NCBI GenBank assembly: GCA_977030845.1
Contig: OZ365115.1
Location: 30,008,001-30,072,000, forward strand
Length of the DNA stretch: 64,000 bases
Source: Fimbriosthenelais zetlandica
Lineage: Eukaryota
Direction of reading: 5' to 3'
The notes beneath the pieces are model-generated. The model saw only the letters and a list, made by a program, of their open reading frames with translations, had not been told where the DNA came from and searched no databases. Position numbers and translations under genes: made by a program. Shown one piece after another: positions 411 to 51,941 of the stretch (positions are counted from its first letter, which is position 1; every line of letters begins with the position of its first letter).

Positions 411-32030
<31,620 letters not shown>

Positions 32031-40201: not shown

Positions 40202-43200
40202 GTGAGTTCTTTACATTTTAATTTTGCCTAAGAACTTATTGGGGACTTTTATAAGAAGAAATCCATTTAAGATTATTAAGGAAGTTAATACAATTAATCA
40301 TTTATGTCTGTTGCAATTAAGCCTTTGACTATTGCTTATAGTATTTGGAGGAGGTTGAAGGGTCCCACCAGCTAACAAAGCTAAAATTTAATATACCTTT
40401 AAAATGATTTTCTTGTTTTTTTTTGTTTTCAGAGTAGTACAGATGTATGCTCGTTTCTACTGGATCGTGGCTCTGTTCTCGGGTTGTATTGGTGTTGGCT
40501 GTATACTAATATCAATATTCGCCATTCCAATGCCGTCCTTCCTGGATGAAGGCAGTGATCCAACAGCGGTAATTAAATATTATGGTATATTGGATATCTC
40601 TGCTTTTTACATTAGTTTCTTAGAAGATTAAAACTTTTGTCTGTGACACTAGTCCATTATTTCTGGCAATATATTTTACACTTTTCAGGGCTTTCAAGCA
40701 CGACACACGTATATCAGTTTGAGGCATACAACCTTTCTTGCGTTGCTGGCTTCACCTATGACTGATTTGCCCCAACAGTCGCAGCCTACAGCACTTAAGA
40801 GACGTGCCGTAGTGATTGCAAACCATGATACCAGCTACTCAGCAGCTAATACTAGTAATATTAGTAGTAGTAAGAGTAGTAGACCTACTACTACTACTAC
40901 TACTACTACTTCCACGACTTCTACTACTACTACTAGGCCTAGTAGTAGGCCTACTACTACGACAACTACTTTACATCCACCAGTGGGTAAGTGAACCAGA
41001 ACCTAGATAGCATTACGTATTTTTACAATAAATTCTGTACACTTAAAGGAAGCATATTATTTTCATGATAATTGCTAATATCACCAGTGAATATGTTTGT
41101 CTAAGAGAGATTTTATATCAGTCTTTGTTTGTATAACATAGAGATTGGAAGCCGTCATACAAACTACCCTGGACCAGCCTGTTTAGATCCACAAGTGAGT
41201 AAGTCCGGTAAGTGAACCAGAAACTAGACGGATCTAACATTACATATTTACCATAAATTCTGTAAATCAAAATAGGAGGAAGCATGTTGAGGGGAACATG
41301 ATTCCCTTTGTGAAAATAGCCAGTTTTTAGCCAAACACCAGTGAGGCTGCCCAAGAGAAATTTTATATCACTCTTTTGTTTCAGATATTCGGAATCGTCT
41401 GAAGTTGGTCTTTGAGTCAAATGAACCTGACAGGGACCTCTTCAACCTGCACAGCTTCCAGTCTATTTGTGATATTGAGAATACTTTCATCCGTCCATCG
41501 CTTCCTCGTTCCATTGTGAACTACCCCTGCCCCTACATGATCTCTCTACCCACCATTACTGCAGCATATAGTAGAAAAAACTGCAAAGACATGACTGAAC
41601 AAGATGTAACCAACATGAAAAACCTCCTAGCTGACTGCTACCCTTATTATAAGAAAACACATTCGCTGTTGGGCACACGAGCACCAGCAAAATGTACCAG
41701 CACAGTGAACACAATTTTCTATTATCTCACAGATGTTAACTTCAAACCATCTCATAACGCGAGTACTAAACTAACGTATACCACAATGATCTACAGTTGG
41801 ACTAACACAAGGACGGACTATTTCAAGAGGGTGTTTGAAGGGAAGCATATATCTCATGGATCTGTGAAGCTAGTGTCGGTCTATGGGAATTTAGATGAGA
41901 AATTCGAGCTGTTTGAGGACTATCTGCTTTCAGATTTGGAGTATTACATTGGTGCTTTATCCTGTAGCCTTATTGGAATCGTCATGTTCCTTTACCTTTT
42001 TTCCTTTGTATTGGTAGTGGCCTCCTTTATCAACGTCATTTTCTCATTTGCCACAGCCTATGTATTTTATTACTACGTGTTTGGTATTCATTTCTTCCCG
42101 TTCATTAATCTTCTGGCTGCTCTAATCCTTGTGGCCATTGGAGCTGATGATGTTTTTATTTTCTATGATTCATGGAAGCAAGCAAAGAAGGATGACTCTG
42201 ACGTGCCTTTAGAAAACAGGATTGGGAGAGCTTTCAGCCATGCTGCTGTCTCTATTGCTGTCACCAGCCTTACTACTGCAGCCTCTTTCTTTGCAAATTA
42301 TAATACCAAGATTGTCTCCATCAAGTGCTTTGCCATCTTTGCAGGTTTTGCTGTGCTTGCTAATTTCTTTTACATGCTCACCTGGACTCCGTCCATTATT
42401 GTAGCAATTGAGGTGGTGGAAAAGTCTATGAAATATTTACTCCAGGCCCTTAAACGTGCTTTTCATGTTGTTATTGCCTGTAGGACAAATATTTCTCGGG
42501 TTATATTCAACCAAGCACTGCCTTGGTTAATAGAAAAAGCTTGGTTCATATGGATCCCCCTCTTCTTACTAATCGGTGTTGGTGGCTTTGTCATTGTACT
42601 CTATAAACCTGGATTGCAACTCCCCAAATCCAAAGAATTCCAGCTTTTCAGCTCCAATCAGTTAATGGAACACTGGGATCAAACTACAAAGATGCAGTTT
42701 ATGTTTGAAAGAGACAATGTTGACAGACAGCTTATCGGACTTCATGTGATCTGGGGTGTCTTGCCCCGTGATAATGGTATGTGGTACAATGTAAGCGACA
42801 TAGGAACATTAGTGCCTGACAAAGACTTTGACATGTTTGCCCCAGAATCACAGCAATTCATGGTGGATTTTGTTAACAGCACTCTCTATTCTGACATAGT
42901 GGACGTTTCTGACTATATGAAGAAGAATAAGCTATCCATTTTTGAAGCTATTCAGCTTATGTTATATAATTGCAAAAATCCTCCCGGGAAGGACACTGTC
43001 TTTGATTCTTACAGAAATGAGATTTGTGTTGAAAATGAGACCGAAATACCTTTCTCTAGAGCCTATCTCCAGCAGAACTTTGCTAAGTTAGTTACAGTTG
43101 TCCAGCAATTTGTCGATAAGCAACGAATCATTGGTCAGCCTAAGTTCAATAATGCCAGCCTTGGTTGCTTCATCATATCTATAAGAAGTAATCAATATTT

Positions 43201-44008
43201 CACTACTTCCTATGATGAAATGGACGAGTTCTATAAAAAGATGGATGCCTTTATCCGGAAATGGAACATGCGTGCGCCAGTTGGCCTCAGTCGAGGTTTT
43301 GTTTCAGGCTATTGGGACTTTACTTTCTATGCCTTACAAAAAGCCCTAGCCGATGGGACCTACTATTCTATTATGTGGTCACTAACTGGTGCTGGTATTT
43401 TGATGCTTCTAACTTCCCTCAACCCACTCTTGACAATCTATGCCATGGTGACCATCACTCTAGCCATATCTTCCACTATTGGCAGCTTTGTTTTGCTTGG
43501 TTGGCACTTGAACATTATCGAATCTATTACCCTGTCCCTTGCTGTAGGGCTTTCTATAGATTTCACCATCCACTATGGCATGTCTTATCGCTTATCAAAG
43601 GAAAAACACAGGCTGGCAAGAACAAGGGAAAGTTTCTCTCGAGTTGGCTCAGCCATTGTCATGGCTGCTTTTACCACTTTTGTGGCTGGAGCTGCTATGA
43701 TGCCCACCAACATACGACCTTACTTTCAACTAGGGGCTTTCCTTATGGTGGTTATGTCCCTCAGCTGGCTCTATTCCACCTTCCTCTTTATGTCCTTGTG
43801 CAGGATCATTGGACCTAATGGGAACACCTGTCAGATTCGATTTCCTTGTTGGAAAAAGAAGAGAAATGATGAAGAGGAGCGTGAAGAGGAGGAAGAAGAA
43901 GTGGCCGGTATATACCAGTCCCCGTTTAGTACGAGTGATCCCACCCTGCAGTTAAACTCACTGGATCACAATGTGGCACCCATAGATGATTTCATGATCG
44001 TTGCTTAG
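40062..44008 (+). CDS. DISP: Dispatched-like RND/sterol-sensing-domain membrane protein, about 1087 aa, 5 coding exons
   Basis: Many hydrophobic TM segments; FFPFINL and AIGADDVF (TM4), GLSIDFTIHY (TM10) and TTAASFFANY match Dispatched; large final exon. Confidence 0.93.
40433..40568 (+). CDS. DISP: Dispatched-like exon 2 (TM1, ...PSFLDEGSDPTA)
   Basis: gttttcag|A...GCG|gtaatt. Confidence 0.9.
40689..40986 (+). CDS. DISP: Dispatched-like exon 3 (GFQARHT..., Thr/Ser-rich tract)
   Basis: cttttcag|GGC...GTG G|gtaagt; DPTA-GFQAR parallels the DPLLGFEPR motif of Dispatched. Confidence 0.9.
40987..41384 (+). repeat. Two homologous introns (40987-41141 and 41208-41384) from a tandem duplication
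   Basis: Shared blocks: gtaagtgaaccagaa.ctaga, cattac.tattt, ataaattctgta, aggaagcat, caccagtga, aagaga.attttatatca.tcttt. Confidence 0.85.
41142..41207 (+). CDS. DISP: Dispatched-like small exon 4 (E)IGSRHTNYPGPACLDPQVSKS, phase 1/1
   Basis: gtataacatag|AG...CCG|gtaagt; second in-frame donor at 41199; supplies a Cys upstream of the LKLVFES motif. Confidence 0.75.
41385..44008 (+). CDS. DISP: Dispatched-like last exon (2624 nt)
   Basis: ttttgtttcag|AT; long ORF ending in TAG at 44006-44008; AATAAA at 44566. Confidence 0.96.
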
Positions 44009-45276: not shown

Positions 45277-49304
<4,028 letters not shown>

Positions 49305-49336
49305 TTTATGGATTGAGGAGCCTAGCTGTTAACTTC

Positions 49337-49579
49337 TTATCTCCAAAATAACTTTCCTCCGATGACTTTTAGGGCAGGTTTATTCTTGATGAGGGCCTCT
49401 CGTCCAAACTGTGTGCTACACTGGGGACAGGAGCCTTTGTCTTTGGTGAAATCTTGCACAATTTTATGAAGGTGAATTTTCACAAGTTGTCCACTGCCTC
49501 CCTTGCGATATGTTAGAAGCAGATTTTGGCATGTGCGACAAAAGACGCTTATTGTTCTTGGTCGCAACGGAGGAACCAT
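49337..49579 (-). CDS. Intronless 80-aa putative Zn-ribbon protein (C14xxC17...C51xxC54), MVPPLRPRTISVFCRTCQ...YRKGGSGQLVK...CPQC...KVIGGKLFWR
   Basis: Strong acceptor tttcctttttttctgtag| at 49593; gatATGG start; two CxxC pairs; resembles from memory a bacterial hypothetical family (not verified). Confidence 0.8.
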   Translation of the reverse strand: MVPPLRPRTISVFCRTCQNLLLTYRKGGSGQLVKIHLHKIVQDFTKDKGSCPQCSTQFGREALIKNKPALKVIGGKLFWR

Positions 49580-49799
49580 ATCATATTCGATTCTACAGAA
49601 AAAAAGGAAATAAAAAATATTCTTAGCGGTAGGCCTATAATTGACCTTCTGCTGGCCTTGGAAATTCATCCAGGCATAGGCCTATAAAGGTAGGGCCTAC
49701 CGGTAGGCCTATTCATATTTATTAAATATAGCCTACTCGGTAGGCCTAGCCTGAATCATCATTTGGAATGGCATAATTTCTAAAATATCATACCGTTAC

Positions 49800-50200
49800 C
49801 TATAGTTTATTTACAGTAAGCTTCTCAGTTATCAGAAAACAGTAAATTACGTTTGCGAGGCGGGAACACTCCGAGAAGCGTACAGATCTGCCACCACGTG
49901 TGAAAAGACGGAACTAAAGTGCCAGTCGTTAGTTCACGGTTTTCTCACTAGGTGACAGCGCTGTTTCGGCTCGAGAGCAAGAAGCGAAGAGACCATCGCC
50001 CGTTGGCCTAAATACTACCACAGGAGTGAGTTAACGCAAGGAATGCTTCCGTAATAAGCTTATCCCAATGGAACTAACAAAGATAGTCATCCTTCCACGG
50101 AATAATTTGTGTGTTACATACCCAAAAAGATTGAATTATAGGTGAAAGGCTTCTCACGCTTCTTACAGACAACATGGACGCCGCCATCTTGTTTTATGCT
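49800..50200. promoter_or_regulatory. CpG-rich bidirectional promoter and first-exon region
   Basis: Minus-strand donors at 49799, 49793 and 50166; plus-strand donor GA|gtgagt at 50026; CACGTG E-box (about 49895); CTCF-like tcactaggtgacag (about 49945); YY1-type cgccgccatcttg (50179-50191). Confidence 0.6.
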
Positions 50201-51337: not shown

Positions 51338-51941
51338 GTGAGTTAGCCTAGGCTATTGTGTATTCGATTGTTCAATCAATTAGTAGGGCCTAAGTGAATC
51401 AAATTATACCTGTAATGTTATTGTAGATAGAAGGAAGATTATGTAGCCTTATTTTGAAATTCAGTAGGCCTATATTAATCCAGAAAATCGCACTAAGTAG
51501 GTCCAATGAATTTTAATAGGCCTAGATTTCATTAAGCCTAGATCAGGCTATCTACATTTGCTATCTATAGCCTAGTCCTTATATAATACTAAAGTAGGAC
51601 TACCGATATTCTTTTTAAACAGTCTAAGTAGGCTATATTATGAACAGGAAATATGTGCTCTAATAATCAAAATTTTCTCATTTAATTAATTCTTACAGTC
51701 ACTCTGTTCTTTAATTAATACCTACCATCCCTATTATTATCATATATACACTATAACAGGTACCTCCAGATATGTAGGCCTCGCATATTTAAATGGATTC
51801 ATGACCCAATCTTGAGTCACTAACAATATGGCTGTTTAAAGACTACAACCTCAGCCCATCATTATATATTATATTGTACTCACTCACCCTCTTACAAACT
51901 CCCACCCCTCCCCTCCCGCCCCCCACCCTTTGCCTATCTAG

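Follow-up and report, generated by a model that had tools for sequence, protein, structure and literature searches.

Can a single animal messenger RNA (mRNA) encode two unrelated proteins, and if it does, how is the second of them translated? The question is raised by one exon in the genome of Fimbriosthenelais zetlandica, within the 64,000-nt window analysed here (assembly GCA_977030845.1, contig OZ365115.1, positions 30,008,001 to 30,072,000). This exon holds a complete 80-codon open reading frame (ORF) for a protein with two CxxC motifs and, shortly after it, the start codon of RECQL, the gene for the helicase RECQ1. Comparison with related loci makes it quite probable that this is a conserved bicistronic gene, in which one spliced RECQ1 mRNA encodes first an 80-residue four-cysteine (Cys4) protein and then RECQ1. 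One mRNA would thus most likely make two unrelated proteins.

The shared exon and its place before RECQL

All window coordinates given here are positions within the 64,000-nt stretch, and all features of the RECQL gene and its shared exon lie on the minus strand. The shared exon spans 295 nt (49298..49592) and is preceded by a 3' splice site (49593..49610) consisting of a 16-nt pyrimidine tract (49610-49595) and an AG (49594-49593). The small ORF (49337..49579, stop included) begins 13 bases into the exon with an ATG at 49579 in the context gatATGg, and its CxxC motifs fall at residues 14-17 and 51-54. It ends at a TAA (49339-49337), with a second in-frame stop, a TAG, four codons further. A 32-nt intercistronic spacer (49305..49336) follows, and then the RECQL ATG at 49304 (context aaaATGg), which lies in a different frame. 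The exon closes with this start codon and four more bases (ATGGCTG, 49298..49304) at the phase-1 donor gtaggt. The original prediction, made from the sequence of the window, had described this anatomy of acceptor, 80-codon ORF, spacer, start codon and donor correctly to the base. It had also excluded a readthrough fusion of the small ORF with RECQL, and we reject that possibility likewise, on the different frames and the double stop.

Beyond the donor, a phase-1 intron of 88 nt (gtaggt...ttcag, 49210..49297) leads to RECQ1 exon 2, which encodes an N-terminal coiled-coil region (49033..49209) and was placed from the sequence and from comparison with relatives. Exon 3 (48732..48911), placed by the same comparison, begins the helicase core and includes the GGGKS motif, and exon 4 (48243..48548) extends the core to the DEVH box. 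Among solved structures, exon 4 matches human helicase Q1 best (151 bits, E 7e-44), with BLM (85 bits), RECQ5 (65 bits) and WRN well behind. By this measure of similarity, the downstream gene is RECQ1, the nearest among the RecQ paralogues.

The contigs around homologues of the small ORF were searched with the RECQL N-terminus. Including the window, nine loci proved to be RECQL-linked, so that the small ORF is kept directly upstream of the RECQL start in eight further loci, a point that the original prediction had proposed to check. Their spacers range from 1 to 75 nt: 1 nt in L028, 2 nt in L003, 4 nt in L014, 7 nt in L007, 18 nt in L001, 19 nt in L012, 32 nt in the window, 54 nt in L006, where the RECQL ORF continues without an intron after the ATG, and 75 nt in L002, a spliced transcript contig. 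The six genomic loci L001, L003, L007, L012, L014 and L028 share with the window the acceptor, the small ORF, a short spacer and an ATG-NNN-G immediately before a GT donor. In every genomic relative the acceptor stands 2-37 nt ahead of the small-ORF ATG. RECQL exons are visible downstream wherever the contig reaches; those of L007 and L012 end before any RECQL exon. The next exons of L001 and L014 continue the reading MAD... in frame. Synonymous divergence among the relatives' contigs is saturated, which sets them far apart. On these comparisons, the place of the small ORF directly before the RECQL start codon is old and conserved. The layout is far beyond chance, because the small ORF has homologues (E down to 1e-41) and because the same arrangement recurs in eight other loci.

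One of these relatives shows an unusual repeat. In L001, a 45-bp unit occurs 53 times (13232-15610, 94% matches) in an array that begins inside a RECQL exon. The repeat copies the last 31 nt of that exon together with its GT donor, so that the intron contains about 50 decoy copies of an exon end plus donor.

The most direct evidence for a common mRNA comes from L002, a 1043-nt Logan contig in which the small ORF (44-289) and its spacer are followed by RECQL sequence that stays open for 226 codons. Its first bases are ATGGCTG, as in the window, and the 226 N-terminal amino acids match the Pfam DEAD domain. The reading runs across intron positions common to the window, L001 and L006, and L002 is therefore read as a spliced transcript with both cistrons. 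The predicted presence of the two ORFs on one molecule is thus borne out in a relative.

A further contig, L013 (1-1606), resembles a full mRNA in which 32 nt separate the small ORF from a complete ORF of 389 codons, here for CEP44 (Pfam E 9e-41) in place of RECQL. CEP44 adjoins the small ORF in no locus other than L013. Since the small ORF precedes CEP44 there, the pairing is not specific to RECQL. Across the loci compared, the small ORF behaves as a habitual upstream cistron, whose partner is usually, and not always, RECQL.

The small protein, its family and its predicted fold

The small protein belongs to a family that is widespread and uncharacterised. An initial search returned seven homologues of 77-83 residues with 57-75% identity; profile searches then yielded 339 matches at E<=1e-3 among 1.84 billion cluster representatives and 276 at E<=1e-18 in a 5.8-billion collection. 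Homologues occur in animals, choanoflagellates, algae, protists and marine Gammaproteobacteria, and in bacteria, algae and choanoflagellates the family occurs as a stand-alone gene. The closest members, presumed to be animal, all stem from assemblies in ENA, Logan and JGI; none of them is named, and none has an NCBI or UniProt source. Among the named relatives are PTSG_04487 of the choanoflagellate Salpingoeca rosetta (84 aa, 56% identity) and proteins of Helgoeca nana and of the green algae Chloropicon and Asterochloris, all uncharacterised. An 83-aa 'Zn-ribbon motif protein' of Alteromonas, Photobacterium and Pseudoalteromonas is of the same family (44-52% identity). The bacterial proteins and PTSG_04487 share with the window protein the Cys4 pattern and a C-terminal IGGKV motif, at 44-56% identity over about 90% of the length. 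They differ from it in being annotated, each listed singly and all uncharacterised, whereas the window protein is unannotated.

Searches of Pfam, NCBIfam and the PDB sequences with the small protein gave nothing above threshold, and the bacterial and algal members likewise have no Pfam or NCBIfam match. Against the Pfam zinc-ribbon families (Zn_ribbon_4, Zn_ribbon_RPB9 and others), the best score was 17 bits, with a cut-off of 30.3. The term 'Zn-ribbon' is a description here and not a family assignment. Many protist members carry N-terminal extensions of 30-160 residues that resemble transit peptides, which the animal members do not have. For the animal protein, an N-terminal extension from an upstream exon was considered and rejected: L002 has an in-frame stop 9 nt upstream, and the MVPP start is conserved.

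Sequence divergence in the family, which the original prediction had proposed to examine, shows that the small ORF is conserved as a protein. Animal members share 55-76% identity, and in all 66 pairs of 12 animal-type sequences the proportion of non-synonymous differences (pN) is 0.16-0.36, against a saturated proportion of synonymous differences (pS) of 0.7-1.0. Where it could be computed for such pairs, dN/dS was 0.02-0.25. In an alignment of eight animal sequences, 21 columns are invariant, and across 65 homologues there is little or no variation at the four cysteines of both CxxC motifs and at some 15 further positions. Saturated synonymous sites and a low pN mean that purifying selection has acted strongly on the protein throughout a deep divergence, and by this evidence the small ORF is a real gene.

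The family also appears to be old in animals. In a maximum-likelihood tree, the animal clade (support 97/86) adjoins the choanoflagellates, and a branch with support 96/95 separates the two from bacteria, algae and protists. This placement favours vertical descent within Holozoa. A recent transfer from bacteria into animals is not favoured, as the animal clade sits with the choanoflagellates and one animal copy has an intron of its own. That copy is L014, where a 129-nt spliceosomal intron splits the small ORF (1860-2223) between ...DFTTTQ and GFCPQC...; every other animal locus examined, the window included, has the small ORF in a single exon. The window contains no second copy of it.

AlphaFold2 predicted an all-beta fold from 65 homologues with a predicted local distance difference test (pLDDT) score of 90.3, superseding a poor model from eight sequences (pLDDT 61). 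In fold searches of PDB and Swiss-Prot, the best structural neighbours of the model are beta-tent zinc domains: Mis18/Yippee, the CULT domain of cereblon, the C-terminal domains of RIG-I-like receptors, MsrB and STEEP1. Like the modelled small protein, these domains are all-beta and pinned by two CxxC knuckles. They show no sequence relationship to it, and every one is larger than its 80 residues. The structural matches are weak (VIA Z 5-5.9, Foldseek template modelling (TM) score ~0.5); with Z under 8 and E of at least 0.19, they fall short of the scores at which true relatives can be told from common arrangements. Among the AlphaFold Database clusters, the matches are uncharacterised homologues only. 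The model suggests that the small protein is a beta-tent-like Cys4 zinc domain, and our best guess at its role is a zinc-stabilised module that binds a ligand or a partner.

Possible routes to RECQ1 from a proposed shared mRNA

In the arrangement we favour, the mature RECQ1 mRNA would consist of one or more non-coding 5' exons spliced to exon 49592-49298, and most ribosomes would translate the small ORF, whose AUG lies in a good context. RECQ1 would be made by the minority of 40S subunits that leak past this AUG; it would help them that they meet hardly any further AUG before that of RECQL. A short overlapping upstream open reading frame (uORF) may also carry some ribosomes past the small-ORF AUG, with reinitiation at the next good AUG. 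Driven by one promoter, such an mRNA would yield the two products at a fixed ratio, with much small protein and little helicase.

The region upstream of the shared exon contains two features worth recording. At 50122-50197 on the minus strand, AAGATGGCGGC precedes an ORF of 22 codons (MAASMLSVRS...), which runs up to a GTATGT donor. The segment is possibly the first exon of RECQL with its transcription-start region; joined to 49592, it would form a 25-codon uORF. As a coding upstream exon, 50187-50122 was rejected, for it is in phase 0 and would meet a stop codon. The second feature is a palindromic octamer, TAGGCCTA, of which the window holds 15 copies against 0.93 expected. Copies lie at 49630-49748, 51465-51524, 31030-31769 and 40934-40953, with four clustered in the intron of about 210 nt directly upstream of the shared exon. 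The octamer is possibly a short dispersed repeat, or else a binding motif.

What distinguishes the stretch between the two start codons is its poverty in ATGs. Over eight RECQL-linked loci, it contains 11 in 2128 nt, or 0.52 per 100 nt. This is 3-6 times fewer than in the controls, which have 1.48 per 100 nt in animal copies without shown linkage, 1.74 in the bacterial homologue ORFs, 2.2 in the whole window, 2.9 in the CEP44 coding sequence of L013 and 3.1 in the RECQL coding sequence of L002. The shared exon of the window has four ATGs in all, at 49584, 49579, 49532 and 49304. The only one between the start codons, at 49532, lies in a weak context (cacATGc), opens a 22-codon ORF in the RECQL frame (49464..49532) and arises from conserved Thr-Cys codons. 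The one recurrent ATG among the loci likewise derives from conserved codons before the first cysteine pair, in a weak context. It is in the protein sequence that the depletion arises: internal methionine makes up 0.70% of residues in 20 animal members, about half of the 1.42% in other homologues, and a hand count found just one in the nine RECQL-linked sequences.

The scarcity of ATGs between the start codons favours leaky scanning. On present comparisons it is the most likely route to RECQ1, with termination-reinitiation second. The exon had no match in Rfam at E<=1, and its folding energy equals that of shuffled sequences (z -0.22); with no such element and no such structure, and with spacers as short as 1-7 nt in relatives, we see no sign of an internal ribosome entry site (IRES).

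Several observations nevertheless weigh against a bicistronic mRNA read by leaky scanning. In nearly all loci a purine occupies -3 of the small-ORF AUG, and a G usually occupies +4; this good context together with 80 codons makes downstream initiation inefficient by either route. Fisher tests of the ATG scarcity gave P values of 3e-4 to 4e-8, which overstate the significance because the loci are related, and the scarcity is no stronger than the amino-acid sequence dictates (11 observed, 12.3 under synonymous reshuffling). A well-supported animal sub-clade (L004, L008-10, P0170, P0171) has no RECQL within 6 kb, and the contigs of L005 and L027 are too short to decide on linkage. Both this clade and the CEP44-linked locus weaken the earlier proposal that the small ORF may be functionally coupled to a DNA-repair helicase. 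L002 and L013 are assembled contigs, taken for complementary DNA solely on their lack of introns, and the argument for co-transcription in the window species runs through comparison with its relatives.

The strongest competitor keeps the bicistronic mRNA and lets RECQ1 arise by termination and reinitiation, after either the small ORF or a short overlapping uORF. Stop-to-start distances of 1, 2, 4 and 7 nt in several lineages have the geometry of coupled termination-reinitiation, and the small-ORF AUG has a strong context. Scarcity of AUGs near a stop codon fits reinitiation as well, as has been discussed (PMC11892635). Spacer length varies between 1 and 75 nt, and 80 codons is long for a uORF. 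The efficiency of reinitiation drops steeply as uORF length grows. Of 10 small ORFs, only 4 have within their final 100 nt the motif UGGGA (TGGGA), which resembles a termination upstream ribosomal binding site (TURBS); its position differs among them, and the motif is not conserved.

The overlapping uORFs offer this explanation a second entry. The out-of-frame ORF that the original prediction had seen at ATG 49584 is present; with 11 codons and a stop (49549..49584), it overlaps the start of the small ORF. Similar ones begin at 307 in L012 (13 codons), at 31 in L013 (13 codons) and at 3 in L002 (47 codons). All four start 5-41 nt upstream of the small-ORF AUG, three with an A at -3; since few ATGs follow, reinitiating 40S subunits would then be led on to the RECQL start codon. 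Such a uORF exists in just 4 of the 8 loci with at least 10 nt of readable leader, which is not beyond chance. Taken together, these points make reinitiation a possible but rather doubtful account of RECQ1 synthesis.

A different solution would dispense with the bicistronic mRNA: RECQL could be expressed from a monocistronic mRNA of its own, through an internal promoter or through an alternative acceptor that lies within the small ORF or beyond it. Alternative first exons do resolve other apparent bicistrons, such as MOCS2, and the spacer of the window contains AG dinucleotides (aacag, ctag); the comparative nature of the bicistronic case in the window species also leaves room for it. The original prediction had suggested that a weak acceptor in the spacer switches the mRNA between the two proteins. 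As a conserved mechanism this fails, because spacers of just 1, 2, 4 and 7 nt in four lineages are too small for a conserved acceptor with its pyrimidine tract. The L002 contig holds both complete ORFs, and AATAAA is absent from the 88-nt intron after the RECQL ATG, which leaves the small ORF without an mRNA end of its own. Separate mRNAs would also leave the ATG depletion between the start codons unexplained. We consider them unlikely.

Far less credible is a precursor of the operon type, from which RECQL would be released by trans-splicing of a spliced leader to an AG shortly before its AUG. Some invertebrates do have operons of this kind whose intercistronic regions are very short, and every locus has an AG no more than about 10 nt ahead of the RECQL ATG, often within a stop or lysine codon. 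An AG that close would arise by chance about 40% of the time, no pyrimidine tract stands ahead of these AGs, and spacers are as short as 1 nt. AATAAA is not conserved and appears only where Asn-Lys codons spell it, some 55 nt before the stop. L002 is spliced and still bicistronic, and annelid-like spiralians are not known to trans-splice. Least plausible of all is that the small ORF is merely a regulatory uORF that encodes a functionless peptide and acts as a translational brake on RECQL. Lying where it does, and with a strong AUG context, it would indeed dampen the translation of RECQL, but its amino-acid sequence is conserved while synonymous sites are saturated, with the four cysteines and some 15 further residues kept throughout the 65 homologues, its fold is confidently predicted, the family stands alone as a gene in bacteria, algae and choanoflagellates, and the same ORF precedes CEP44.

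With one bicistronic mRNA as the favoured reading, a broader and more tentative proposal can be made. In animals the small protein may lack an mRNA of its own and persist solely as a first cistron within the leaders of mRNAs of other genes (in most lineages RECQL, in one CEP44), and would hence have been missed by annotation across phyla. It might work with the genome-maintenance or centrosome proteins that are co-expressed with it, and its AUG-poor coding sequence might have been shaped by the passage of ribosomes to the host gene.

Elsewhere in the window, a Dispatched homologue forms a single exon of 867 codons on the plus strand (41405-44008). Its nearest named relatives are those of annelids (Capitella, Lamellibrachia, Paralvinella), followed by Haliotis and a nemertean, which marks the genome as spiralian and probably annelid-like. 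Between Dispatched and RECQL, the minus strand carries an ORF of 234 codons with many Ser, Lys, Asp and Glu residues (45277-45981).

Relation to known bicistronic genes

A bicistronic RECQL would add a deeply conserved gene to the short animal list; we know of few conserved examples in animals. It would tie helicase dosage to an upstream 80-codon ORF, and RECQ1 output should then depend on start-codon selection. The locus also reveals a protein family that is in no animal annotation, despite its 339 cluster representatives and its reach into bacteria, and it illustrates how gene prediction with one coding sequence per mRNA systematically misses such genes. The family, with its spread of spacer lengths (1-75 nt) and with CEP44 as another host gene, provides a natural test case for leaky scanning versus reinitiation. 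In the literature on RECQL/RECQ1 we found no report of a bicistronic arrangement or a coding uORF, in line with what the original prediction had stated, and none of such an arrangement that involves the small-protein family.

Vertebrates offer parallels in gene structure. MIEF1-MP/MiD51, ASDURF/ASNSD1, PYURF/PIGY and SNURF/SNRPN are bicistronic mRNAs with a conserved upstream ORF of 70-115 codons that encodes a folded protein, followed by a longer and unrelated main ORF. None of them involves RECQL or the small-protein family. Unlike in those cases, the RECQL start codon shares the exon of the small ORF, and a conserved phase-1 intron follows directly after it.

The mechanism we favour has a precedent in Drosophila, where sloth1 and sloth2 are frameshifted ORFs on one mRNA, 5 nt apart and without an IRES, with a linkage conserved across many animals; reporters showed that the sloth2 ORF is translated by leaky scanning (PMC9681215). 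The small ORF and RECQL share with this pair the two frameshifted ORFs, the short spacer and the conserved linkage. The sloth ORFs encode paralogous small proteins of one complex, and the Kozak context of sloth1 is weak. Here, in contrast, the upstream AUG context is good and the products are unrelated, an 80-aa predicted zinc protein and a helicase of about 650 aa.

Green-algal bicistronic loci (TOM22, OST4, REX1S/REX1B) are similar in the distribution of start codons: they have a short ORF1, an inter-ORF distance of, for example, 14 nt and an under-representation of AUGs in ORF1 and spacer, and ORF2 is translated by leaky scanning (PMC11892635). They match the small ORF and RECQL in AUG scarcity and in the shortness of ORF1 and spacer. 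They differ in the weak Kozak-like contexts of the ORF1 starts and in belonging to Chlorophyta, while the present case concerns animals. Conserved bicistronic mRNAs with coding upstream ORFs are already known; RECQL is a well-supported addition to them, for which the comparative case is unusually strong, and the small-protein family is unannotated in animals.

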